DNA of 64,000 nucleotides, taken from contig NW_027361754.1 in NCBI RefSeq assembly GCF_039654945.1, forward strand, positions 8,928,001 through 8,992,000. The letters run 5' to 3'. The translations under genes and the position numbers were made by a program. The DNA comes from Dendrobates tinctorius (taxonomy: Eukaryota). Shown here piece by piece: positions 1 to 25,385 of the stretch (positions are counted from its first letter, which is position 1; each line of letters opens with the position of its first letter). The notes below the pieces were generated by a model, which was given only the letters and a program-made list of their open reading frames with translations, ran no database searches and had not been told where the DNA came from.

Positions 1-419
1 CATTTATTTTAAAGTGAATCCTAAAGCCCAGAATTAGATGGCTGCTCTGAAACTTTTTTTTTTTACGTTTCTGCAATACAAAAACGCACATAAAAACACG
101 AGAAGGAATTTGTGCAGAAACGCAGCAGATTGCAACGTAGAAACCGGCGATGTGAAAACCAATCCGGAGCTGCACATACTGGTGGGAGTTGCTGCAGATT
201 TTACCCAACGCCGGTGAAGGGTTAAATCAGCAATGAAGATCCTGAACACGGAGCATGACGGATGCAGGACGCGTCCTGGGCTACTGCAGACAATGACCTG
301 CCCCTCCCTCCTTACACTGCAGCCATGGTCCTAGCCGGGTGCAGGGTGAGGGCAGTGCCCCCGACCAGAACCGTCAGTCCACACCCTACAGGTGACACAG
401 ACACACCGCCGCCACATTA

Positions 420-590
420 CTGCTCCCTACCTGGCTCCAGCGCTGGCTTCACTAGGGTGCGCGCATCCTGATGACGTCACTGCACGTCAACCAATGGACG
501 AGCGGGGCTGAGGTTTCCTCCAATAAGAAAGCACTTTTCTTTTCTTGTGCATCGCTTAATATCTTCCCCCATGTGGACGGTGAGTACCGG
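420..590. promoter_or_regulatory. Probable bidirectional housekeeping promoter (NMNAT1 non-coding exon 1 on +; divergent gene, probably LZIC, on -)
   Basis: NRF1-like TGCGCGCA 458-465, perfect CRE TGACGTCA 472-479, CCAAT at 491 and 520. + strand donor G|GTGAGT at 580 and - strand donor CAG|GTAGGG at about 430. Head-to-head LZIC/NMNAT1 is the known mammalian arrangement, but no LZIC coding sequence is seen here. Confidence 0.6.
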
Positions 591-1224
591 GGGTGTATTG
601 TTGGGGGAGCGCAGGTGACAGATGTGTTATGTTTCTGTGGCACTTGTGGTCTCTGTGCAGGTGGAGCAGCCTGCAGTGCAGCTACACGACTAGACAGAGA
701 CTCAGAGAAGCACAAGGGCAGTACACGTCAGGTGCAGGAGGAGCGACCTCCAGGTGCCCACTCTGGCCCCGTGCAGTGGTGACAGTCACCGCCCTGTACT
801 CCTGGTCCTCACCTGCATTTCTCATTGGGACCTGTCCAGCGACGCCCCCTGTCCACGTCCCGTTCACTTTCACTAGTTCTGCAGGAGTAAGAAATAGGCA
901 CGGCCAAAGATCATGGCTGGCAATGGAGGTGGATGGAGCCCAGACTGCGCTTCACACACCCTGGCCTGGTCCAGCTGACCCGGGGATCTGCCACCGACCT
1001 CCGGGAGAGCGAGAGGGCTTCCTAAATCCGAGAGTGTCCCCTAGGCCTGGTGATGGAGTTATGCTCCTGTCATGGAGGATCCCACACTCCTCCCCACTGT
1101 CCCAGGTTCCTCCAGCATTAGACAGAGGTTGTTCTAAGACTGCAGGCCTTCTGACTGTCCTGGAAATATGTGGTCATTATCCTTGTAGAACAGCCTCCGT
1201 ATGATGTTCACTGTGTACTGCTTC

Positions 1225-1540
1225 TCTTGTCTGTGGCCTTATGGGGTCTCCTGCCCTCGTGGGGGCCCTTCTTTAGCCAAGTTTGCTGTCCCTCATCGAC
1301 CCTCGTGGGGCTCTGTTTCCTGCCCTCACTGCCTTTGTGAGGTCTCATCTCTTCCCATTTTTTGGCCCCGCTTGCTGTCCCCCTACCGGCCCTCGTGGGG
1401 CCCCATCTATCTACTTACCAGGCCTTGTGGGGCCCCATCTCCTGTCTGTCTACCTGCCCTTGTGGGGCCCCATCTCCTGTCTCTATCGGCCCTTGTGGGG
1501 CCTCAATCTCCTACTCTTGTGGGGTCTTGTGGGGTCATCC
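1225..1540. repeat. Degenerate ~34-bp minisatellite (GGCCCTTGTGGGGCCCCATCTCCTGTC...)
   Basis: Repeated CCCT(C/T)GTGGGGCCCC cores, about 9 copies. Confidence 0.75.
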
Positions 1541-2522
1541 ACTTTTCTTAAACCTTTTTTGGACCCTCTGTGTTGCATGTGTCTGTTTTGTTCTTCCTCT
1601 GAGTAGCCCAAACATTATGGCCACAAGTTTCATCCTTTCCATGTCACCTTCTTGTCTTTCATCTGTGATTGATGGCTTTATAAACCTGGTTCCTTCCAGG
1701 GCCTCTCAGAGATATTGGACATTTTCCCTGTAGGACATTTTTTTAAAGTGCATTACCAGTGACAAAACTGATTACTTATTTTCCCCCCAAAAAACAGGAC
1801 TCTACATTGTAATGTTTTAAAGATTGAAAATAAATAAACAGTTACTAGATGAGGGTCCTCTAATTAGCACCCTCATAGCATGGTCAGAGTGGAGCGGTTC
1901 TAGAAAGTGTCTCACCCTCTGGAGGATCTGTCCTGTCTTGCATTACACAGATAACATGATAAAATTAGTGGCGCAATGTAATATGTTTCCTCTAGGGGCA
2001 CTGCAGAGAAATTGAAAACAGATTAGAGCTGATCACTGGGGGTCCCGGCAGGGGGAAACTTTGTGATCACCTTGTCGAGGGTAACGATTTTCTAAATGAA
2101 AAACCCTGATTTAGCTGGATGCAATGTCCCTGAGGTTATTTAAGTAAGAGACCCAAATCTGCAGGTGGCTTTATACATATATTCACTATAACATAGATCC
2201 TGTCCAGTTCCCTCGGTGTGGTGGCGACTCACGTGGTGATTTTTGACTAATCAAATAGAAACGCTTTTAAAATAAACCAATGAGATCAGATATATTTATG
2301 GTCATTGTATTTAATGAGAAATTGAACTTTATGCGGTTCCCTGCAGCACAGAGTATTTCAGGAGAGGAGTGTACTGATTTAGTGGAAGGCAGTCACCTTG
2401 TCCAAATGTGATAAGATTAGTCAGTACAGAACATGTATGGAGGGTGGGGGTCACAGTCTTCTCATCTCTTGGTATACATCACTGTGTGCACCCCCCCCAG
2501 ATCAACATGAGGTCTTCTAGCC

Positions 2523-2684
2523 CAGGGTTCCCCAACTCCAGTCCTCAAGGCCCACCAACAGATCATGTTTTCAGGATTTTCTTAGTATTCCTCAGGTGAT
2601 AATTGCTTCACCTGTGCAATACAAAGGAAATCCTGAAAACATGATCTGTTGGTGGGCCTTGAGGACTGGAGTTGGGGAACACTG
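2523..2684. mobile_element. hAT-type hairpin MITE
   Basis: CAGGGTTCCCCAACTCCAGTCCTCAAGGCCCACCAACAGATCATG... is mirrored at the right end. Imperfect 8-bp TSD TTCTAGCC/GGCTAGCC. Confidence 0.8.
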
Positions 2685-3786
2685 GGCTAGCCAATCACAA
2701 GCGACTCAACTTTTCCAAACTTTCTGTAGTTTAGGATCATCTGAAGCATCTTTATGTAAACCACAATTACAGCAGCACCATCTAATGGTCAGTGGCTTTA
2801 TGGCACGACTTTGGATATAACTACAGTATAGCAATTTTTTCCTTTTGGCAGATGCAGTAGCTCAGGGGAAAGATGTACAGTATATAATTAACTACATTGT
2901 GGAGTTGTATATTATTTTACTTTATACATTTTATAGCTATTGTCTGCTTTAGTGCCTTCTAGCAGATATTGTGGGGGACATGATGGACCCCATTATATTA
3001 CCCCGAGTGGGAGTCATTGTCATGAATAGCTTAACATTGGTTAAACATTTAATACACAGTGACCCATTCTTAGGCATAGACTTAGTGGGTCCTGTAAAAC
3101 ACAAAGCCTGAAAAAGGTGCAGCCTCACACTGACCACTAGGTATGCCAACAACAAGTCCTGCAGCAATCAGTTGTAGGGTCACCCTAACTTGGATATCCC
3201 CTTTAAGAGCTGGGCATTTTTAGGACTTAAAGCACTATGTTTAGCCTGTATGTTATGAATGGAAATTGTATCATTTACTATAATATAACTTTAAAAGGCT
3301 CATGATATGCAGAGATGAGAGCACCCACATACATGAGCAGGTGTGTGACGGTGGGAGCCCTGCTTTACTGCAGGCTGTCAGCCTTGGCTTGTGGTTTTCT
3401 GCTGTGAAAAATGCCCCCCCCCCCCTTGTCTCTGCTCCTTTATTTCCCCTCTAATCTCTGAATGACACAATAATTTGTCCATTTGGGAACATAGCCAAAA
3501 ACTGTCAGCACAGAACCTGCCAATCACTGGGAGACTTCAGTAATCAGGAGCCCCCCACCACTGGCTGCTGCTGGAATCTCTCTCCTCAATTTCATAGTGG
3601 GAAGGGACCATTGTTTCTGATAGAAACTGACTGCTCTCCTGTTCTGCCGCCTCTGTGGACTGATTTGCAGGACCAATAGGTATGAAGCGCATTAGTCCTC
3701 ACTGTTCTCAGTCCGTTCCCCCCCTTCCATTGTCCACAAGTACAGTAGTTCTTTATGAAGCAGCGACTCCGGGGGGCTACAACTCC

Positions 3787-3917
3787 TCAGATGTGCCATG
3801 TACATGGGCAGCAGGTCACTACTTCATAGCAGATGCCGGTTCTAGTTTCTTTACTAAGGACCAGCCCAGGAAAAATGGAGTTGTAGAGCCAGAAAGGGCC
3901 AACGATCAGGAAAAACA
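3787..3917 (-). CDS. Nested ~4-TM membrane protein gene, coding exon 6 (last): (V)FFLIVGPFWLYNSIFPGLVLSKETRTGICYEVVTCCPCTWHI*
   Basis: Minus-strand branch point ACTAAT and acceptor TTTTTTTGCAG. Phase 1 matches exon 5. TGA at 3789-3787 and minus-strand AATAAA at 3444-3439. Confidence 0.85.
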
Positions 3918-5077
3918 CTGCAAAAAAAAGTCCATAGTTCCAAAATTAGTGTCTGATATATTTAAGTTCCCATTTATTCCAAAGCTCTTGGTGCAGATTA
4001 TACAGTGATGTCAGTTCTCAGTCAGGTCAGGAATTGCAGCCATAACATGGACCGTAAAATAGGACCACTACATGGTGGTGTGAATAAGGTCTTATTCTTC
4101 TTTCTGCTGGTTCCTCTTCTGACACTGCCCGTGTGATTCCTACCTAAGGGTTTGTAGCAATGGAGATGTGTAGAGCTGAGCAAAAAAGATTTGTAGGACT
4201 CAGGTTCAGCGGGGACATGAGTGGTCCATTACCATCGACCACACCCCTGCTGGCATCATCAGGACCTCTTCTGGTTTGTAGGGACTCATGCTGCCCCATG
4301 ACATCACGCTGGAATCACATAGCAGAAGAGGCGTCAGGGGTGTCAGCAGCTAGAAGGCGGTTCACAGGGCTTTGGTCCATCCGCCATGGATTACTGACAT
4401 GACTGCTGGAGTAGGGTCCTGCACAAATCATTTTTGCTCAACTCAGGAGACGCATGATAAAGTGGAGAGGGCATGGATTCTTTCTTCTAGCTTTAAGTGG
4501 ATGATATCCGAGAGCAATAGCTCACTTTTGCCTGGACAGCACATACACCGATAATCGATCTTAGGCGTATCGTCTCTACAAGGCACTCCGGGTGTTTCTC
4601 CAATCACAATGGGGGTTGCAGTTTTGCAGGTTGGGGAGCAGTGCTATAGGGGGTTTCCTAGCATATCAATAACAAATGTCATCATTGTCTGATTAATCGG
4701 GGTACAACTCTTTTTATCTCTTCCCATTGTGTTACAGAGCTGTGTAGACACAGGAACAGGACGTGTTGTCTTGGGGCAAAGGCAGAGATTTGGTTTAAGC
4801 CTTTGATAAAGAATTGCAATAAGCTTTTTGGGGTAATTCTTCTCAGTGCCAATAATAATAGCATAAAGAAAAGATAAGTGCCAGTAAGAGTGTCCCCAAA
4901 GTAGCCAGAAATGACCGATAAACCTCCAGAAATAACTCGCCTTCTGATACCACCCTGTTCACACAGATCATATATGCCGGTTGCTTTGTGAAGGTTGACT
5001 GTTGGTACGTCATAGGCTGTAGGATTATCACGTGTCCTCATGTCTTTGTGTGGTTGTATATAGAGATATGTACACAC

Positions 5078-5144
5078 CTGTAGATAAGACACTGATGTAG
5101 GACTGCACCACAGACAGGTAATACAGAGCTGGAGTGCTCATGGC
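5078..5144 (-). CDS. Nested membrane protein gene, coding exon 5: AMSTPALYYLSVVQSYISVLST
   Basis: Acceptor CATCTCTTGCAG, donor CAG|GTGTGT, 67 nt, phase 0->1. Confidence 0.85.
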
Positions 5145-5493
5145 CTGCAAGAGATGGAAGACTTCACGTTTATAGTGTTCTGTCAAATGCAAATTGAAGA
5201 TAAATAGTATGGCAGACTTGAAAGTTCCTACAGGGCCGCGATACAGGGGTGTGCTAAACATCCCAGGTTAACTAGAAAGAAAGCCATTTGCACATGTTGG
5301 TTGAGGTGGTTCCTGTTGTACATTTTGCATCAGCCCGACAGCTATTATATGGCATTAGGACAGCTTGGGGCTCCTATTGGTGGGGGATATATCCAAAATA
5401 TACTTCAGTTTCCTTATAGATTCAGTTCTGTAAATTTTTGCTCATTCTTTATGTAGTAATTCTTGGGTTGAGATCAACAACTCGAGCACTTAC

Positions 5494-5624
5494 ACATTCT
5501 GCAGCCAGAGATGTCATTAGGACAGTGCAGATCCCCTCGATGAAGGAGGCCACCCCAAATATGTGAAAAAGGGTCTTCAGCCAACATGGTATCGGCTCCA
5601 CGAGTGCGAGGATGAGAGCAAACG
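5494..5624 (-). CDS. Nested membrane protein gene, coding exon 4: (A)FALILALVEPIPCWLKTLFHIFGVASFIEGICTVLMTSLAAEC
   Basis: Acceptor CCTTCTATTGCAG, donor GTAAGT, 131 nt, phase 1->0, hydrophobic open frame. Confidence 0.88.
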
Positions 5625-5627
5625 CTG

Positions 5628-7236
5628 CAATAGAAGGTGCACTGTCAGCGCAGGACGGTAATAGAAGGTGGATGGTCAGTGCAAGTCAATAATAGAAGGT
5701 GGACTATTAGCGCAGGGCATTAATAGAAGGTGGACTGTCAGCGCAGGGCAATAATAGAAGGTGGACTGTCAGCGCAGGACGGTAATAGAAGGTGGATGGT
5801 CAGTGCAGGTCAATAATAGAAGGTGCACTGTCAGCGCAAGGCAGTAATAGAAGGTGGACTGTCAGCGCAGGGCAATAATAGAAGGTGGACTGTCAGCGCA
5901 GGTCAATAATAGAAGGTGCACTGTCAGCGCAGGACGGCAACAGAAGGTGGATGGTCAGTGCAGGTCAATAATAGAAGGTGGACTGTCAGCGCAGGTCAAT
6001 AATAGAAGGTGCACTGTCAGCGCAGGACGGTAACAGAAGGTGGATGGTCAGTGCAGGTCAATAATAGAAGGTGCACTGTCAGCGCAGGGCAGTAATAGAA
6101 GGTGGACTGTCAGCGCAGGGCTGTAATAGAAGGTGGACTGTCAGCGCAGGTCAATAATAGAAGGTGGACGGTCAGTGCAGGGCAGTAATAGAAGGTGCAC
6201 TGTCAGCGCAGGGCAGTAATAGGTGGACGGTCAGCGCAGGTCAATAATAGAAGGTGGACTGTCAGCGCAGGGCAGTAATAGAAGGTGGACTGTCAGCGCA
6301 GGGCAGTAATAGAAGGTGGACTGTCAGCGCAGGGCAGTAATAGAAGGTGGACTGTCAGCGCAGGGCAGTAATAGAAGGTGGACTGTCAGCGCAGGTCAAT
6401 AATAGAAGGTGGACGGTCAGTGCAGGGCAGTAATAGAAGGTGCACTGTCAGCGCAGGGCAGTAATAGGTGGACGGTCAGCGCAGGTCAATAATAGAAGGT
6501 GGACTGTCAGCGCAGGGCAATAATAGAAGGTGGACTGTCAGCGCAGGGCAGTAATAGAAGGTGGACTGTCAGTGCAGGTCAATAATAGAAGGTGCACTGT
6601 CAGCGCAGGACGGTAATGCAGGTCAATAATAGAAGGTGCACTGTCAGCGCAGGACGGTAAAAGAAGGTGGATGGTCAGTGCAGGTCAATAATAGAAGGTG
6701 GATGGTCAGTGCAGGTCAATAATAGAAGGTGGACTGTCAGCGCAGGGCAGTAATAGAAGGTGGACTGTCAGTGCAGGTCAATAATAGAAGGTGCACTGTC
6801 AGCGCAGGACGGTAATGCAGGTCAATAATAGAAGGTGCACTGTCAGCGCAGGACGGTAAAAGAAGGTGGATGGTCAGTGCAGGTCAATAATAGAAGGTGC
6901 ACTGTCAGCGCAGGGCAATAATAGAAGGTGGACGGTCAGTGCAGGGCAGTAATAGAAGGTGCACTGTCAGCGCAGGGCAATAATAGAAGGTGGACTGTCA
7001 GCGCAGGGCAGCAATAGAAGGTGGACTGTCAGTGCGGGGCAATAATAGAAGGTGGACTGTCAGTGCGGGGCAATAATAGAAGGTGGACTGTCAGTGCAGG
7101 ACAGTAATAGAAGGTGGACGGTCAGTGCAGGGCAATAATAGAAGGTGGACGGTCAGTGCAGGACAGTAATAGAAGGTGGACGGTCAGTGCAGGGCAATAA
7201 TAGAAGGTGGACTATCAGTGCAGGGCAATAATAGAA
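5628..7236. repeat. 31-bp minisatellite (AATAGAAGGTGGACTGTCAGCGCAGGGCAGT), about 52 copies
   Basis: Direct tandem periodicity of 31 nt. Shared deletion variants recur, showing higher-order duplications. Confidence 0.97.
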
Positions 7237-7469
7237 TTTGGTCTGGCAGTAATACAAGGTGATTGACAGTGGGATGCGGCTGTTTATGCATGTATGGCAG
7301 TGTAGCTTTTCAGTAGCTGGAGAGTCTCAGGTTGGAAACCAGTCTAAGGAATATTCAAAAAGTTTAGATTTTTCAAAAACACCCCTGTAGCCCCCACATA
7401 TGAGACCCTTTGTTTTCTTTTACTAGATCCCCCTTTAAATGCTACATGTAATGCAGTGCAGACTCTCAC

Positions 7470-7549
7470 CAGTTGTGAATAGGGTGAAGCCAATGTTGCA
7501 GATCAGGTTGTTGAGAAGAGGTTGGTTGCAAAATCGCGATGAGCTCGGC
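7470..7549 (-). CDS. Nested membrane protein gene, coding exon 3: PSSSRFCNQPLLNNLICNIGFTLFTT
   Basis: Acceptor TTTTTCCCCACAG, donor CTG|GTGAGA, 80 nt, phase 2->1. Confidence 0.88.
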
Positions 7550-8410
7550 CTGTGGGGAAAATATTGGGGTTAGTTCGATCTACAAACACCAGCTTGAGAT
7601 GCGGACCCCTGACCTGCATACAGTTTATCAACAATGAACCCTATTAAAAAAAAAAGGATTATCTAAACCAGACAACACTTTAAAGAGGTACTGGCCCCTG
7701 GCAGTGATCAGGAAGGGGCGCAGCTCTGTAACATACGTGCTAAATGATGCGACCTTCTTTCATCAGTCGGTGTCTTGGGCTGTGGAGAGGAATCACCTAT
7801 GTCGGGGTCCACACCTGCAGGACGCCAGCTGTTGTACAGGCTGTCAGGGCATGCTGGGAGCTGTAGTGTAACTATAGCAGGAGTGCTGCGAGTTGCTGAC
7901 CTATGTTATAGAATAGGAGCGTTTGCTCTGCCATTGCCCCTACAGGACTAGGATGGGGACATATTCAAAAACCCCTCTATCCCTCAACTGCACTGCTCTG
8001 TGTAGTATGTCATTGTGTTACCTTCCTATAATGGCATCATCTTTATGGAGGTTTTATACCTTGTAGTATTTAGTGCTCAGGTTTATCATGGAGGATGCGG
8101 TGAATGGGAAGTAGAGCTATGGGACAGGCCGCAGCGTCAATCATCCCGAAATTATGTAGGACCACAAGCCAAGCTGAGAGGACAGGTAAGATACCCCCAC
8201 ATGCCGGAAGCTTGGATGTAAAAACTGTAATATTCCAATGGCTGCTTTTGGAGGAAGGTAGCCGTGTTTTTCCTACCCCATACAACACCTTTATTGCAGC
8301 CAGCATAAACAATGGAGGTTCATATTCTGGAAGCCACAATTATAAAATGCATCGTGTCTGCAAAATCCATGAAAGTATCTCATCAGGTATTATATATGGT
8401 ATAGACTTAC

Positions 8411-8479
8411 ACAGACCTGAGCAGTATATACACCTGCGGGACGGTTAGGGTGATCCCTGAGGATGCCACAGTCACCAGC
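8411..8479 (-). CDS. Nested membrane protein gene, coding exon 2: (L)LVTVASSGITLTVPQVYILLR(SV)
   Basis: Acceptor TTTCTCTCTTTCCTCCAG. Two in-frame donors: GTAAGT after 8411 or GTCTGT after 8417. Phase 2->2. Confidence 0.82.
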
Positions 8480-8562
8480 CTGGAGGAAAGAGAGAAATTA
8501 GGAGAGATTAGGGATCATCATGGCGGGTTGCTGTTCATGTAGCAGATAGGGAGCGCACTTAC

Positions 8563-8636
8563 AGTCTGAATTTGTGGGTTCGGGGTAACCAGCGGCTGAG
8601 ATGGTGGGAGACGTGAGCTAGAAAGTAGAAGATCAT
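8563..8636 (-). CDS. Nested membrane protein gene, coding exon 1: MIFYFLAHVSHHLSRWLPRTHKFR
   Basis: ATG at 8636 with A at -3, donor GTAAGT at 8562, 83-nt intron to exon 2. A candidate 5' UTR exon donor CAG|GTGGGT lies at 9587. Confidence 0.75.
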
Positions 8637-11470
8637 GCTGTCTGTCACCTGATCCTCAGCTATGAATAATGTAACGTGGCTCCCGGCTCATTCTGTGCCC
8701 ATTGTAGTCCTGCTCTCCTCCTACGCGGCAGAGGGGACTTAAAAGGCCACATTCACATGGTCAGTATTTTACATCAGTATTTGTAGCCAAAACCAGCAGT
8801 GGCTGATAAATACAGAAGGCATGACGTGTTTCTATTATACTTTTCCTCTGATTGTTCCACTCCTGGTTTTGGCTTACAAATACTGGTGTCAAATACTGAC
8901 CAAATTACGCCTCTCCATTATTAATTCCTGGGCTTGATGTCAGCTGCCAATTCAAAGCTGACATCAGCCCCAATATTATTACCCCACATCGCACCAGGGC
9001 AAGCGAGGCTAAGCGTCAGAATTGGTTCGGCTGAGAGCTGATGTTTTTAGTCTGGTAGGGGGCCAATATCCATGGCCCCTTCCTTGGCTATTAATAACAG
9101 CCCACAGCTGTCTGCCTAGCATTTGCTGGTTATTAGTTATGTGGGACCCTAATCACTTTTTTTGTGGGGGTCCCCTATTTTAATAACCAGTAGAGGCTAA
9201 ACAAACATCTGTGAGCTGATATTAATAGCCTGGGAAGCTCCATGGATATTACCCCGTTCCCAGGCCATAAACATCTGCCCCCAGCTGTTAGCTTTCCCTC
9301 TGCTGGTTAAGAAAATTTCAGGGGATTCCACATCATTTTTTTCAGAAATGTATTTATCAATTACTAATATACATGTACAGTAAGCTACAGATTCACTGTA
9401 CTAATATATATGAGAATATTTACTTTGAAAACTATCTTTATATGACATAGAGAATTACTGTATGTAAAAATCGGACAGATTTTACAAATGTTATTGTGTC
9501 TCCGGCCTTAATAAGAAAGTTGCAGAGTTGCACCTTAAGTTTCCAGAGACATTTCCGGGAACATGCCCAATATCACCTCGTACCCACCTGCATTGGCCAG
9601 CACTACTTTCTTTCATTCTCTTTCCAGATTTGTTCGGTTTTCATAGTTTCTGCACCACTTTTGCAATTGTCACTTCGGCCTGATGATGCATTGTCTGTCC
9701 TTTTGGAAACAGGATGCAAAATTTGCTTCTGGTGTTGCATGGATTAATTCTTCACCATTGCACCAGTCTCCAGTCTCGGTTACCAGTGGAGCTTGCGGAT
9801 GACACCGTGCAGGAGCTCAGCACTCTTCACCACGAGCCAGTTAGTGACTATAACACAGACCATCACTGTGATAGCCAGAGACTGAGCCACCCAATGGAGC
9901 ATGGTGGATGCAGCTACAGGACTGTAGTGGCACTGGGGCAACGTGGCATCTTTGAAAGGGGGGAAGGGAGAGGCTGGGACGGATTAGCATCTCAATGGTT
10001 TATACAGTTGGTTGGATGCAGACAAAAGTATTCAGCAGAGCTATGTGATGTGTGGGCATCTGCTGGCTGCACACTGGGACCATTCTCCAATCTGTGAAAC
10101 TGTGCAAGCAGCGCCCTCTGCTGTACACACGCGTGGAATTTGTGGAGGTGGCTTGTCATAGGTGGAAACATTTTCATTATTTTCAGTAATTAGAGTGCAG
10201 AAAAAAATGATTGTTACATATGTTAGTTGATAAAGTTAGTTAAAAAAATTTCATCCTGCAATTATCATTCATTTTCAGACCTCCTGAATCCAGTTTACAG
10301 TCTTCTCACAGGTTCGGACTTTTCACTTGTGAACGTGCCCCTGTCAGTAATGTTTATTCGGACTCCCATGACAGCACCACGAGAGAGGGGATCCGCCCTT
10401 CGGGAACAGGAAACCTACAGATACAAAAAGGGTGGCACCTCTCCCACGCATCAGTTGGTTTCCTGTTCCTGAGGGGACGGGATCCTGCAGATGACCGGAT
10501 CCCAGGCCGGCCGGCTGGTACAGGTAGCGAGGGGGTCTCCTACCTCGGCCTGGTGCGGAGCTCCTGGAAGACGCCACGGTGGCCCAGGATGGGTGGCACG
10601 GCGGTGGCGTAGGCAGCAGGGAGCGGCGTCCGGAGGAGGTCCGTCTCCATAAGCAGACCGCGCCGGTGAGTATGCCCCCCGGGGACTCCTAACTCCAGCG
10701 GCGCGATCGCGGTGGTCGGGGGGGGGGGGCGGCGCGGCTGCAGAGCGTTGGGGTCGGGGAGCGCTCCATAGTGCAGTGCCCGGGCGTCCCGCGTGACTTC
10801 CGGTCACGTCGGAGTCGCAGTGACGTCAGAAGGCGCCACTGCGCAGGCACGGAGACCCAAGATGGCGGCGCCCATCGGGAGCGCCGGTTCCCCTGCCAAA
10901 AGCGGCGCCAGCTGGGGAGGGGGGCCCTATTAGGGGGGGGGCGCGGCAGGAGGATATCTGCTGTCCGGTGGAGGGGTATATAAGCAGGACCCTAGATGGG
11001 TGCCTTGCCTTGGCCACATTATTGCAAGCCAGTAATGGAGAGCGATCAGGAGCAGCAGCAGCAGCAAAAGCAGCAGCAACGGCGGCAAGAGCGACAATCT
11101 TCACTGCCGCCCCTGGATGACCTTAGGCAGGTCAAACAGAAGAAGAAAGAGGCCCGTGACAGTAAGGAACGTCCGGGACGAAGTGACCAGTCCAGTCATA
11201 AGAGCTCCGCTAGGCGGACAGGAGCATCGACTGACAAAAATCCCCCTCATTCTCCGGTACTTGATTGTGGCACTGGTAAGTGATCTTCGTGAATGTTCAC
11301 TCAGTGATGGGGCCTCCTGTGTTTTATTCTAGGGGAAGAAAGCTACGAGTAAAACCAGACACAGGGAATGCGCACTCTGTGCATGCCCGTTACCAGATTC
11401 ATGCCCCAAAAAGTTATGTCCCCCCCTGTATCCAGCGGACAGTGGCGGAGGAATCGCCCACAGTAGCGGC

Positions 11471-12583
11471 GTGTTTAAGGGATATAGTAAGGGCAGAGAT
11501 GAGGAAACCCTAAAATCCCTGTCCCAACCAGAGAGTGTAAGGGGTGAAGACCCGGTGGAGTCGGATTCCTCGACAGAGTGGAGGAGAAGTAAGGGCTCCC
11601 ATATTTCATCTCCCTCGTCCTCCTCAGAAGAAGAGGACTCTGGTCGGTTTTGCCTGCCACTCGACCGAGTAGACAAATTGGTAAAAGCGGTCAGAGGAAT
11701 AATGGAGGTGGAGGAGCCGAAGCCTCAATTATCCATGCAGGATGTGATGTTCGGGGGTCTGGAGCAGAGGAAGCGTAGGGTCTTCCCACTAAACGAAAAG
11801 ATCCAGGATCTCATCCGCAGAGAGTGGAAAAAGCCAGAGAAAAGAGGGTCGCTACCACCAGCCCTCAAGCGGAGATATCCCTTTGACGATACAGCAATGA
11901 ATACTTGGGACAAGGCCCCCAAATTAGATGCAGCTATTGCGAAAGCATCGAAAAAATCCTCGCTACCCTTTGAGGACATGGGGTCCCTTAAAGATCCTCT
12001 AGACAGGAAGGCAGATACCTTCCTTAAAAATACCTGGGAGATGGCAGCCGGTTCCTTAAGACCAGCAGTAGCATCGACTTGCACGGCCAGGTCCATGATG
12101 GTCTGGTTGGACCAGTTAGAGTCGCAGTTAAAACAGGGAACATCTAGACAGGCAATCCTGGGGGCCCTTCCAATAATCCAGGATGGCGCAGCCTTCCTAG
12201 CGGATGCCTCGGCTGATGCAGTCAGAATGGCCGCCAGGGCAGCAGGACTCTCTAATGCGGCTCGGGGAACCCTGTGGCTGAAGTGCTGGCCGAGAGATAT
12301 TCAGTCCAGGGCGAAACTCTGTACTATCCCGTGTGAGGGGGAATATTTATTCGGAGCAGTCCTGGACGAATTACTGGAGAAGGCCGGGGATGATAAAAAG
12401 AAATTCCCAAACCTTTGGTCCGCATCTTACCGTCGTCCGTTTAATAGGAGGAGATTTGGTCAAGGGAGAAGGCGTAACCCTTCACCTAATAGAGACCGTC
12501 CCAGATGGGAGGATAGAAGGAGAAGAGGTACGGGCTTCATGTTCAGACGCTCGTCGAGAGAGCGAAAAAGACAAAACCAATGA
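11471..12583 (+). CDS. DIRS gag-like ORF1 (main part)
   Basis: LKRRYPF...W.KAPKLDAAI...LKDPLDRKAD...LWLK.W...EGEYLFG motifs, homologous to ORF 50999-51880. The N-terminal CxxC segment is frameshifted. Confidence 0.85.
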   Translation: MFKGYSKGRDEETLKSLSQPESVRGEDPVESDSSTEWRRSKGSHISSPSSSSEEEDSGRFCLPLDRVDKLVKAVRGIMEVEEPKPQLSMQDVMFGGLEQRKRRVFPLNEKIQDLIRREWKKPEKRGSLPPALKRRYPFDDTAMNTWDKAPKLDAAIAKASKKSSLPFEDMGSLKDPLDRKADTFLKNTWEMAAGSLRPAVASTCTARSMMVWLDQLESQLKQGTSRQAILGALPIIQDGAAFLADASADAVRMAARAAGLSNAARGTLWLKCWPRDIQSRAKLCTIPCEGEYLFGAVLDELLEKAGDDKKKFPNLWSASYRRPFNRRRFGQGRRRNPSPNRDRPRWEDRRRRGTGFMFRRSSRERKRQNQ

Positions 12584-12595
12584 CTAGCGATTCCC

Positions 12596-14474
12596 ATGGA
12601 GGGTAGACTGTCATCCTTCCTCCCAGCATGGCTACAGGTCACCAATAGTGACTGGGTGCGGAATGTGATATCCACCGGACTCAGGTTGGAGTTCACTCAA
12701 GTCCCACGGGATACCTTTAAACCAACACCCTTAAGGTCTTCACCCTTCGAGCAAGCGGCTTTAGAAGCAGAGGTCTTGAACCTGTGTCTAAAAAACGTTC
12801 TGATAGAGGTTCCAGAATCTGAGAGAGGAAGAGGATTCTACTCTCCCTTATTCCTAATCCAAAAGCCGGATAAAACATTCAGAACGATTATTAATTTACG
12901 TTTTCTTAATGAATTTTTGGTTAAACGCACCTTTAAAATGGAATCCATTAGTTCTACAATAAAGATGCTGTTTGAAGGGTGTTTTATGGCAGTAGTGGAC
13001 TTAAAAGACGCATACTATCATGTGCCCATCCACGCAGATTTCCAGCAGTTCCTGAGAGTGGCGATATCAATAGACGGTATAATCCGTCATTATCAATATA
13101 GGGCCCTTCCCTTTGGTCTCTCAGCAGCGCCCCGGGTATTTACAAAAATAGTGGCCGAGGTTATGGCTCATTTACGGGAAGTTGACATCTTAGTTATCCC
13201 ATACTTGGATGATTTTGTGATTGTGGGAAATTCAGTGGACCATTGTCTATCTCAGATTAAAAAAGCTAAGTGCAGATTAGAGAACCTCGGATGGATTATA
13301 AATTACGAAAAGTCCCGATTTCAGCCCTTAAAGGTCCAGAAGTTTCTAGGCTTGCTGTTAAATTCAGAAACCCAGCAGTGTCTGTTACCCGTAGATAAAT
13401 TACAGCAGATACAGCAGCAGGTTCTTCGGGCAATCGATAGACCCTCCATGACCCTCAGGCAGGCCATGTCCCTGTTAGGCTCCCTAACCTCATGTATCCC
13501 AGCGGTCAAGTGGGCACAATTCCACACTAGGGCCCTTCAGAATGACGTCCTGGTTAATAGCAGAACCTTAGAGGGCTTCTTGCAGGGTCAGGTATTGCTA
13601 AGCTCCTCAACTATTACATCTCTTAGGTGGTGGCTCGATGTCGGAAATTTAGCCTCGGGGGTGCCCTGGGTGATACAGATATCCCGCGTAGTAATCACAG
13701 ACGCTAGTCCTTGGGGTTGGGGGGCCCATATGGGGGACATAGTGGTACAGGGACAGTGGGACTCCGATGCTGAGATCTCATCTAACCAGAGGGAGCTGCT
13801 GGCGATTGAATTGGCCATTAAAAAACTCATTATGTATCTACAGGGCCATCATGTGAGGATACTCTCGGACAACCAGGTAGCGGTAGCCTATGTCAACCAC
13901 CAAGGTGGAACCCGCTCCAACGCCCTGATGCGGATAACGGAACGTCTCCTTCAGATAGCAGAGAAAAATTTTCTATCTTTAACCGCGCTCCACATCAGCG
14001 GAAAAGACAACATGAAGGCAGACTTTCTAAGCCGCAGGGCCCTAAGGCAGGGAGAATGTGCCTTAAACTCAGACATCTACAATCAGATTGTCCGCAAATG
14101 GGGTCGACCGGAGGTGGACCTCTTTGCCACCAAGGAAAACAGGAAGGAAAAAACTTTGTTCCCTAAATCCCAGGGAAAATCCACTGGCAGTGGACGCCCT
14201 CCTAATAAAATGGGACTTCTCGCTGGCTTACGCCTTTCCGCCTTTGAACCTTCTACCTCTGGTAGTGAGGAAGATCAGGGAAGACTGGGCAAGAGTCATA
14301 TTGATTGCCCCCTTCTGGCCCAGAAGGACCTGGTTTGCATGGTTGAGGACCATGTCAGTAGGCGATCCTTGGGTACTGCCGAACCTTCCAGATCTCCTCT
14401 ACCAGGGGCCAGTCAACCACCCACAAGTAGCGGGACTCCGTTTGACGGCATGGTGTTTGAGAGGACACTATTGA
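12596..14474 (+). pseudogene. DIRS reverse transcriptase-RNase H-adenine methyltransferase-like ORF, frameshifted near 14150
   Basis: DLKDAYYH, LPFGLSAAP, YLDD, TDAS..GWGA, SDN. The MT-like motifs VDLFA and YAFPP...APFWP are split across two frames. Confidence 0.9.
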
Positions 14475-15480
14475 GGGATAGAGGGTTCTCAGAAAATGTA
14501 ATCGATACACTCCTAAAAAGTAGGAAACAAACCACCACAGGTATATATGCTAGAACCTGGAGGCGATTCCTGTCCACCTGTGAGTTTAATATCAGGGATG
14601 GAATACCTGTAAAACAGATCCTAGAATTCCTCCAGAGGGGTCTCGAGTTGGGCCTTTCCACTAGCACATTGAAAGAGCAAGTTTCAGCTTTAGGGGCCCT
14701 ATTTGCATGCGACATTGCCGGTAACCATTGGGTAGCGAGATTCATTAAGGCAGTTACCAGATCAAGACCCATACTCAAAGATAGGTGTATGCCTTGGGAC
14801 TTAAATTTAGTCCTGACAGCCATGACAGAGAAACCGTTTGAACCTCTGGATTCTGCTTCACTAAAGATGATATCACTTAAGACAGCCTTTTTGGTAGCAA
14901 TAACATCTGCACGTAGAATAGGCGACATACAGGCACTTTCCAGATTACCTCCATACACAGAATTCTTACAGGATAGAGTAATCCTAAGGCCAGACCCGGC
15001 ATACCTTCCCAAGGTAGCATCTCATTTTCATAGGACACAAGAGATAGTTCTGCCTTCCTCCCTAATCCAACCAATCCTAAAGAACAAAGACTTCAGGCTC
15101 TAGATGTTAAGAGATGCCTACTTAAATATTTAGCAGCCACAGATCCTTGGAGGAAGGAGAATTCATTATTTTTATCCTTCCAAGGTCCCAGGAAAGGGTA
15201 TAGAGTGTCAAAGCGCACGTTAGCAAGGTGGATTAGGGAGGCTATCTCTCTTGCCTACACAGCAGGTGGGGGTCCGGCTCCACAGAACCTGAGGGCGCAT
15301 TCCACCCGTGCCATGGCATCATCCTGGGCAGAGAGATCGGGAGTATCAATTGACCAAATATGTAAGGCGGCCACCTGGTCATCTCCTTCCACCTTTTTTA
15401 ACCACTATCGGTTAGACATGTGTGCCTCCTCAGACCTCACCTTCGGGCTAAGGGTGCTGCAGGCTGTAGTCCCTCCCTAA
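14450..15480 (+). pseudogene. DIRS tyrosine recombinase, frameshifted near 15060
   Basis: TSARRIGD (catalytic R), HSTR, ATWSS..TF..HY. Confidence 0.9.
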
Positions 15481-16419
15481 TTTAGTTTACATCTCTGTAA
15501 TTCTCTCGTGGTGCTGTCATGGGAGTCTGAATAAAGTATTAAGTTACGTACCGGTAACGGTATTTTTCGGAAGCCCATGACAGCACCCTTAGTTCCCTCC
15601 CTTGTTCACGTAGAAGGGTGCACCCCTTTAGAGGATTGTTTTTGCGAGTTCACCTTATGTGGGAGATGGTTTAAAGAATTGTAAATAGGATAGATAGGTT
15701 GTATATATTGTGTATATGCGGTGTACTAACCATGGTAGCCTCTCAAGCTCTGTAATCCAACTGATGCGTGGGAGAGGTGCCGCCCTTTTTGTATCTGTAG
15801 GTTTCCTGTTCCCTCTCTCGTGGTGCTGTCATGGGCTTCCGAAAAATACCGTTACCGGTACGTAACTTAATACTATCCTGGATATTGCTACCTTCATTAG
15901 CTCTTATATATCAGCACAGCTTCATTCCTGAAATGATTTTCCCTATATGTGCTTACCTCCACCCTACCTGAGACTATAGATGCTTTTTCACTCCACTATG
16001 CCATGTATAACCCCCTCACTGCTGCTGCTTCTAACACTGAGAGAAGTCAGGGGGGAGAGCAGAAAGAGCCCTCACAATCAGGAGCAGAGCTCTTACGGAA
16101 TCTGCAGAGCAGCCAGCTTAGTGAAGGACTGCAGCAGCAAAATGAAGAATATTTACAAGGTTGCGTCATTTTACATTCAGGAAGCAAATAATAAAAAAAT
16201 AATAAAAAAGTTTCGGGTCACTTTTTAAAATAAACTTGCATGTGTGTACATGATTCAATACATGACTTGTATCTTAACATTTTTTAGCATGTTTTCCCAT
16301 CAATAGCTTCTTCCTAAAATTTCAAGTTGTCTTTGAGCCTATGGGAGTAGACGAGCTGCTTTTTTTCCCATACACAACACACAGAAATGGGGGATTCCTG
16401 CTCCCCTGTCTCTATGTAG

Positions 16420-25103: not shown

Positions 25104-25385
<282 letters not shown>

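Follow-up and report, generated by a model that had tools for sequence, protein, structure and literature searches.

A conserved minus-strand gene upstream of NMNAT1 in Dendrobates tinctorius is very probably the orthologue of TMEM274

Introduction

We analysed a 64,000-nt stretch of the Dendrobates tinctorius genome (contig NW_027361754.1, positions 8,928,001 to 8,992,000). This stretch, hereafter the window, is free of N, and all positions refer to its full length. A gene of several exons on its minus strand is, in our judgement, very probably the orthologue of TMEM274; that the locus is a real gene is practically beyond doubt. It is also likely that this anuran orthologue encodes a protein of 181 residues and is transcribed, spliced and under purifying selection.

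Mouse Tmem274 and the human unitary pseudogene TMEM274P were introduced by Mudge et al. (2019, Genome Res; PMC6886504). According to that paper, Tmem274 is conserved at least to coelacanth and zebrafish, with possible relatives in scallop and Trichoplax, and its expression was weak in all species examined. The pseudogene status of the human copy is known to us from the same paper alone. Elsewhere, the literature names TMEM274 only in tables.

A preliminary description of the locus had presented it as a hidden and novel gene and had guessed that it might be a functional orthologue of a gene lost in humans, TMEM274P. It proposed homologue searches, spliced RNA, the ratio of non-synonymous to synonymous substitution rates (dN/dS) across frogs, AlphaFold and Foldseek as checks. 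The guess has held up: family membership, synteny with NMNAT1 and LZIC and dN/dS below 1 agree with it, the gene looks functional, and TMEM274P is a unitary pseudogene (PMC6886504). The claim of novelty has not, since the family was published in 2019 (PMC6886504) and NCBI models exist in the frogs Mixophyes fleayi (LOC142106691), Ascaphus truei (LOC142496718) and Aquarana catesbeiana. The window gene is thus an unannotated orthologue in a known, uncharacterised family. The window protein itself is absent from a collection of 15 billion proteins.

Membership of the TMEM274 family

Sequence searches were started from exon 4 alone, and the orthologues that it retrieved then served as proxies for the window protein. 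A phmmer search with exon 4 against 1.84 billion representatives returned 17 proteins; frogs scored best, followed by lizard, mammal, newt and teleost. A profile built from nine of these proteins matched 59. Among the matches were 'Tmem274 [Phodopus roborovskii]', 'Transmembrame protein 274' of Peromyscus, a Mus caroli LOC protein, LZIC-fused models (Fukomys and Polypterus) and a rat entry named after LZIC. Public names in this family can mislead: besides the LZIC names and fusions in rat, Fukomys and Polypterus, a Varanus member is called 'Chitin synthase 2' and a Vicugna protein carries the UniRef name 'Fluoride ion transporter CrcB'.

Members of exactly 181 residues were found in lizards, Amia, gar, eel, sharks, amphioxus, Saccoglossus, a crinoid and a gastropod. 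The 181-residue form of the window protein aligned with such proteins without gaps (181/181 positions), at 54% identity with lizards, 51–52% with Amia and gar, 43–44% with sharks and 38–41% with invertebrates. We then scored the possible products against a profile hidden Markov model (HMM) built from alignment A2, from which the window protein is absent. The 181-residue form reached 262.1 bits, 6.6 bits above the 183-residue form that had been proposed first (255.5 bits). A form without exon 1 scored 233.0 bits and a shuffled copy −3.9 bits.

Among 35 sequences from molluscs to mammals, only the columns C53, L57, G103 and C116 are invariant. The window protein has all four residues, with P18, Q40, S49, Q55, P83, G96 and W148 also in place. 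It differs at 2 of 17 near-invariant columns: Ala replaces Gly at position 73, as in other frogs, and Val replaces Pro at 171, as in the species of L001, a Logan transcript contig from another frog with 81% protein identity to the window protein. The models of Mixophyes, Ascaphus and Aquarana represent orthologues of 69–73% identity with the same exon lengths and synteny.

Selection was estimated by the method of Nei and Gojobori over exons 2–6 (155 codons) of the window, L001 and Mixophyes. The dN/dS values were 0.22, 0.26 and 0.18, at dS of 0.48–0.89. For exon 1 (25 codons, window versus Mixophyes) the value was 0.43.

Exon structure and transcription

The preliminary model comprised six minus-strand exons. 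When excised, each was bordered by a GT donor, an AG acceptor and a pyrimidine tract, and together (552 nt) they gave an uninterrupted translation identical to the quoted 183-residue protein. To this extent the preliminary model was reproduced from the sequence.

Transcripts came from two probable RNA runs, X1 and X2, of a related organism A. These runs contained 7–8% of the sampled words, close to the fraction that is exonic, and the organism A contigs were mapped onto window positions 3000–8950. Each run yielded one spliced minus-strand contig (1396 nt at depth 22.5 in X1; 2097 nt at depth 64 in X2). The contigs show the joints 3917>5078, 5144>5494, 5624>7470 and 7549>8417 and so support four of the five coding junctions; each joint has CT..AC at its ends, which reads GT..AG on the minus strand. 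Three of the joints match the proposed boundaries to the nucleotide. The fourth does not: the RNA uses an exon 2 donor at 8417, where 8411 had been proposed. The contigs run unbroken through the 3' untranslated region (UTR) from below 3000 to 3917, and the X2 contig has 486 nt more beyond 3000.

The donor at 8417 (CAG/GTCTGT) is in frame and lies 6 nt upstream of the one at 8411 (TGT/GTAAGT). Its use drops the residues 'SV', and every homologue reads LLRPxSS without a two-residue insertion. Because this donor agrees with all homologues, the protein has 181 residues; RNA, homologues and profile score alike show the 183-residue version to be two residues too long. We are confident of the donor at 8417. 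The two donors stand in tandem (8411–8422, minus strand; CAG/GTCTGT/GTAAGT) and the downstream one is closer to the intronic consensus; it could give rise to a minor isoform with two additional residues. In the corrected model the coding exons measure 74/63/80/131/67/131 nt, as they do in Mixophyes, with equal phases (Table 1).

A minisatellite occupies most of intron 3 and stops 5 nt short of the exon 4 acceptor. The junction between exons 3 and 4 is used normally in the RNA contigs despite this repeat.

Table 1. Positions of the gene and of other features in the window
Feature	Positions	Strand	Remarks
Upstream first exon	9588–10073	−	5' end approximate; donor CAG/GTGGGT after 9588; joins exon 2 directly in L001
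Upstream micro-ORF	9780–9902	−	40 codons plus stop; one hydrophobic helix, core AQSLAITVMVCVIVTNWLVV; strong Kozak context CCACCATGC
Coding exon 1	8563–8636	−	74 nt; ATG at 8636–8634 opens the N-terminal helix MIFYFLAHVSHHLSRWLP...
Coding exon 2	8417–8479	−	Corrected to 63 nt (8411–8479 in the preliminary description); RNA joint 7549>8417, homologues and a 63-nt exon in Mixophyes
Coding exon 3	7470–7549	−	80 nt; extracytosolic loop 1 with invariant Cys53, start of predicted transmembrane helix (TM) 2; RNA joints on both sides
Coding exon 4	5494–5624	−	131 nt; TM2 to TM3, invariant Gly103 and Cys116; RNA joints
Coding exon 5	5078–5144	−	67 nt; loop 3, start of TM4; RNA joints
Coding exon 6	3787–3917	−	131 nt including TGA stop; end of TM4 and Cys-rich tail GICYEVVTCCPCTWHI; RNA joint 3917>5078
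3' UTR	2514–3786	−	Lower end estimated from the length of the X2 contig; polyadenylation-signal motifs listed
Minisatellite	5629–7236		31-nt unit, ~51 copies, 93-nt higher-order unit; Tandem Repeats Finder
Miniature inverted-repeat transposable element (MITE)-like element	8758–8902		35-nt inverted arms; ~120 nt upstream of the exon 1 ATG; inverted-repeat scan
First recognisable NMNAT1 coding exon	25248–25367	+	MEKSDER...; coordinates approximate; six-frame motif scan

The 5' end of the gene

The preliminary description took the gene to be complete in six exons and overlooked an upstream exon at ~10073–9588. L001 consists of exons 2–6 preceded by ~320 nt, of which nt 27–345 are collinear with window positions 9892–9584 and are followed by exon 2. 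The CAG/GT donor after 9588 is conserved. The genomic sequence of Mixophyes (L002:9846-10123) aligns with window positions 10073–9780 at 78–84%, and this is the only further block upstream of exon 2 that could be aligned to Mixophyes. The Mixophyes RefSeq model starts in the upstream exon and omits exon 1. Each organism A contig has 361–378 nt upstream of exon 2, which would fit the length of the upstream exon. Frog transcripts begin ~1.4 kb upstream of the ATG that was first proposed. Nucleotides 191–341 of L001 were considered as a separate, non-homologous exon; a gapped alignment showed them to be a continuation of the upstream exon.

Exon 1 is conserved as a coding exon. The motif M-I-x-Y-x-L-A-H-x-x-x-H-L-S-R-W-L-P, the ATG, the length and the GTAAGT donor are kept in the window, Mixophyes and Ascaphus; in Mixophyes the exon is intact (L002:11506-11579, 74 nt, GTAAGT donor). 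Its peptide aligns with those of Ascaphus, lizards, mammals, fish and invertebrates, and including it raises the family profile score by 29 bits over the exon-skipped form. A candidate acceptor lies 5' of exon 1 at 8660/8659 and would make it a cassette exon. We infer that exon 1 is alternatively included and provides the canonical start.

Several observations weigh against a 181-residue product. The RNA stems from a relative of ~96% identity, that is, from a species other than that of the window. The joint 8479>8563 is absent from the joints of the organism A contigs over window positions 3000–8950; in the bin 8373–8571 these contigs account for ~67 nt, corresponding to exon 2 and 4 ambiguous bases, and for none of the last 9 nt of exon 1. 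L001 also lacks exon 1. Since exon 1 was seen in none of the RNA contigs, exon 1 and the 181-residue product rest on conservation and not on RNA. Finally, a window mRNA that skips exon 1 has an in-frame ATG and a predicted protein of 166 residues with a non-conserved N terminus of 10 residues.

The main product might therefore be this 166-residue form, which starts with MKESSAGQCR, lacks the conserved N-terminal helix and is made by joining 9588 to exon 2; or little TMEM274 might be made because a 40-codon open reading frame (ORF) in the upstream exon captures ribosomes. L001 has precisely the exon-skipped architecture, the Mixophyes RefSeq model agrees with it, as do the joints and lengths of the organism A contigs, and the canonical N terminus is missing from the Engystomops model and from the ranid transcripts L003/L004. 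The conservation of the exon 1 ATG, 74-nt length, donor and motif in three frogs argues the other way, as does an Ascaphus model that includes exon 1. Moreover, the alternative N termini of the window, L001 and Mixophyes are mutually unrelated, so that no protein constraint acts on them, and minor isoforms get lost in assembled contigs. We regard the 166-residue form, or poor translation of the gene, as a serious possibility, albeit one that falls short of being probable. Use of canonical exon 1 in at least some transcripts of the window species is somewhat favoured by the evidence.

The 5' end varies among frogs. An intact canonical N terminus is missing from the models of Aquarana and Engystomops and from the ranid transcripts L003/L004; these have either a stop codon 5' of a remnant '...STHFRL' or an unrelated leader sequence. 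Some neobatrachian frogs seem to be losing the first coding exon by decay or to have had it replaced; the window, Mixophyes and Ascaphus have it intact. The losses in ranids and Engystomops indicate that this end of the gene is unstable in frogs. The annotated models differ as well: in the NCBI model of Mixophyes, codons 1–25 of the upstream ORF are joined to the gene, isoform X1 of Ascaphus has an N-terminal extension of 43 residues, and the Aquarana model runs across the region of exon 1 in a different reading frame.

Two MITE-like elements, the one in Table 1 and another at 9030–9316, are located between the upstream exon and exon 1. Contig depth over 8745–8950 was 10^4–10^5 in all runs, as for a repeat of very high copy number.

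A conserved micro-ORF in the upstream exon

The 40-codon micro-ORF of the upstream exon has the same length in the window, Mixophyes (L002:10001-10123), Ascaphus, Logan frog DNA contigs and gar; further coordinates are L005:8880-9002 and L009:9143-9265. The Ascaphus version is 82% identical. In gar, the micro-ORF lies 0.74 kb upstream of the TMEM274 ATG and its peptide shares 53–60% identity with those of frogs. Among frogs, dN/dS of the micro-ORF was 0.10–0.24, and variable sites fell on codon positions 1, 2 and 3 in the numbers 12/4/27, a third-position bias. Micro-ORF and TMEM274 share one transcript in L001. The Logan contigs L007/L008, which carry the micro-ORF, are unspliced and collinear with the genome and thus uninformative on splicing.

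In Podarcis, Mus caroli and amphioxus, no counterpart of the micro-ORF was detected up to 10 kb from the gene. Protein searches gave no named homologue, a feature search led only to the family's own cluster or to unnamed clusters, and a literature search with fragments of the peptide found no match.

The micro-ORF would be translated first, so that it would either limit translation of TMEM274 or encode a peptide of its own. It is a candidate for a conserved micropeptide or else for a regulatory upstream ORF whose effect depends on its peptide. That it is translated and functional is a tentative proposal. Along these lines, the key product of the 5' part of the gene may be a single-pass micropeptide of 40 residues that acts with, or regulates, the four-pass protein as part of a bicistronic unit. 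The exact length of 40 codons in four frogs and gar, the low dN/dS, the skewed substitutions, the strong Kozak context and the shared transcript in L001 are consistent with such a unit. However, searches of the 10 kb around the gene in lizard, mouse and amphioxus did not reveal the micro-ORF, it has no homologue of known function, and peptide-dependent regulatory upstream ORFs could show the same pattern of conservation. We consider the bicistronic unit a rather doubtful, if testable, alternative to a locus whose principal product is the 181-residue protein.

Predicted protein architecture

An AlphaFold2 model was computed on alignment A2 with the Ascaphus orthologue (P0019:44-224), 69% identical to the window protein, as target. 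The model (predicted local distance difference test, pLDDT, 81; predicted template modelling score, pTM, 0.75) consists of an N-terminal helix (residues 2–16) and a bundle of four long helices (19–45, 56–80, 86–112 and 121–153). We thus predict an amphipathic N-terminal helix followed by four transmembrane helices, in agreement with the four hydrophobic segments noted in the preliminary description. At the threshold used, a hydropathy scan detected three hydrophobic stretches, which correspond to predicted TM2, TM3 and TM4; TM1 was not flagged.

Positively charged residues are concentrated ahead of TM1 and behind TM4; by the positive-inside rule, this would place both termini in the cytosol. 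Cysteines in loops 1 and 3 had been noted at the outset; they are Cys53 and Cys116, two of the four invariant columns in the 35 members. Both lie on the same predicted side of the membrane, as would fit an extracytosolic disulfide. The tail motif G-x-C-Y-E-P-V-x-C-C-x-C-L-W-H is conserved from invertebrates (molluscs) to frogs.

These features suggest a possible mode of action. The Cys53–Cys116 disulfide would staple the outer face, and the cytosolic tail C-Y-E-x-V-x-C-C-x-C-x-W-H might be S-acylated or bind metal. The small protein would act as a non-enzymatic four-pass membrane scaffold or accessory subunit of the MARVEL, sarcospan or tetraspanin type, with expression that may be low or limited to few cell types. 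We offer this mechanism with considerable reserve.

A number of results argue for caution here. The model is that of the Ascaphus orthologue and not of the window protein, and the tail is poorly modelled (pLDDT ~45). Pfam gave nothing above threshold in the six exon pieces or the 35 family members, and a profile search of PDB sequences gave no match at E <= 10. With Foldseek, significant scores against Swiss-Prot models, PDB, AlphaFold clusters and ESM Atlas were confined to members of the family. Feature searches of a protein atlas with exon 4 and the Ascaphus orthologue likewise returned only the family's own or unnamed clusters. The best matches of an exhaustive VIA-align search were synaptophysin (Z 8.2), sarcospan (Z 8.1) and PRPH2/ROM1 (Z 7.4), and by VIA-align's own caveat a Z of ~8 is within noise for helical bundles.

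MARVEL proteins such as synaptophysin and CKLF/CMTM form a four-helix membrane bundle with cytosolic termini, the arrangement predicted for TMEM274. The match to synaptophysin (PDB 9bra chain s) covered 116 residues at an rmsd of 3.3 and ~10% identity, with a Z score that is within noise for helical models. Foldseek found nothing in PDB at E <= 0.001. CKLF and CASP-like proteins were weak Foldseek neighbours, and one scallop member of the family carries the automatic name 'MARVEL domain-containing protein'. Against Pfam MARVEL (PF01284) the family stayed below the gathering score: one of 35 members touched MARVEL (E = 0.023), and the exon pieces and the closest full-length orthologue matched no family. 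Unlike TMEM274, MARVEL proteins have neither the conserved pair of loop cysteines for a disulfide nor the CYEPVxCCxCLWH tail. Sarcospan, tetraspanins and MS4A proteins are of similar size and form four-helix bundles. Their scores (sarcospan, Z 8.1 and 7.3; PRPH2/ROM1, Z 7.4) were not significant, and MS4A proteins were weak Foldseek matches. In contrast to these scaffolds, to which it has no sequence relationship, TMEM274 lacks a large extracellular loop.

The preliminary description also suggested a loose likeness to TMEM272. The likeness amounts to a small multi-pass protein with four TM segments and a Cys-rich region near the C terminus. A protein named TMEM272 occurred neither among the 59 profile matches nor among the best 30 fold neighbours in the Swiss-Prot and AlphaFold-cluster libraries, whose TMEM272 content was left unchecked, and the two proteins were not compared directly. 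With no TMEM272 in any sequence or fold search, we consider membership of, or close relationship to, that family very improbable. The idea that the locus is a chance ORF or a decaying pseudogene, to which the weak expression in all species examined (PMC6886504) and the pseudogenised human copy might lead, is effectively refuted by 262 bits against −3.9 for a shuffled copy, the intact ORF and splice sites, spliced RNA contigs at depths of 22.5 and 64, dN/dS of 0.18–0.26 and collinearity with invertebrate proteins over 181 residues.

Genomic neighbourhood

TMEM274 (minus strand, 10.07–2.5 kb) lies 16.6 kb upstream of the first NMNAT1 coding exon. A further NMNAT1 coding exon was recognised at ~29.9 kb by the motif ISSTKVRR, also on the plus strand. 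As the NMNAT1 coding exons are on the plus strand, TMEM274 is antisense to NMNAT1 and lies upstream of it. The window does not include the first coding exon of LZIC, a gene that lies beyond the window start. The order NMNAT1 (opposite strand), TMEM274, LZIC (same strand, downstream) is found in Mixophyes, Podarcis, gar and Mus caroli. It is the same in Ascaphus, where the NMNAT1 model spans the entire locus, so that TMEM274 is nested. The amphioxus locus lacks this synteny. In gar, the NMNAT1 model includes a fused lipocalin (RBP7-like) domain.

The preliminary description had placed the gene inside intron 1 of NMNAT1. Its antisense position upstream of the coding exons stands. Nesting itself is seen in the Ascaphus model only; the NMNAT1 coding ranges of Mixophyes, Podarcis, gar and Mus caroli do not enclose TMEM274. 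Since no non-coding exon 1 of NMNAT1 was located in the window from the DNA sequence alone, nesting is at present conjectural for this genome. In mammals, a bidirectional promoter serves both NMNAT1 and LZIC, so that the nesting would hold there.

A DIRS-like retroelement at 10353–15846 has ORFs resembling gag, reverse transcriptase and tyrosine recombinase, and inverted repeats at 10353–10461 and 15754–15846. It sits ~280 bp upstream of the conserved 5' block of TMEM274, and a second copy lies near 50.8–54.8 kb. A CpG-rich block at 10500–10999 (GC 0.71; CpG observed/expected 0.86) was considered as a shared NMNAT1/TMEM274 promoter and rejected, as it falls inside the 5' part of this retroelement. 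No Rfam family was found within window positions 1–16000.

Discussion

Our result is the annotation of a known family by a corrected frog gene model, and not a new kind of gene. What is new is the corrected model, the retention of the ancestral tail in frogs and the conserved upstream micro-ORF. TMEM274 is one of few ancient, broadly conserved metazoan genes that were lost in humans.

Mouse Tmem274, whose human counterpart is TMEM274P, belongs to the same family as the frog gene and shares with it the NMNAT1/LZIC neighbourhood, the N-terminal helix, the four TM helices and the invariant cysteines. It differs at the C terminus. TMEM274 of rodents and other placentals has 162–163 residues and ends just past TM4 (…CPRPDAKPTV) without the Cys-rich tail, whereas the frog protein keeps the ancestral 181 residues. 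No remnant of the tail exon was found at the Mus caroli locus (L011:15727-15813). As the placental proteins lack the conserved tail, mouse Tmem274 is a truncated version of the ancestral protein. The upstream 40-codon ORF is present at the frog and gar loci and was not detected in mouse.

The TMEM274 locus of non-amniote bony vertebrates may be a two-ORF unit, in which an ancient micropeptide would be translated from the first exon of the TMEM274 mRNA and would act with, or control, TMEM274. Amniotes would then have lost the peptide, placentals the Cys-rich tail and humans the gene. We put this scenario forward as a conjecture that is more likely wrong than right. If it is true, it would describe the stepwise dismantling of a membrane module that is still whole in frogs. 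The micro-ORF is in either case an unannotated candidate micropeptide or translational regulator that can be tested directly.

Frogs, lizards, fish and invertebrates keep the 181-residue form with the Cys-rich tail, which mouse lacks. Because mouse Tmem274 is without the tail, a frog or a fish may be better suited than mouse to work on the ancestral function of TMEM274.

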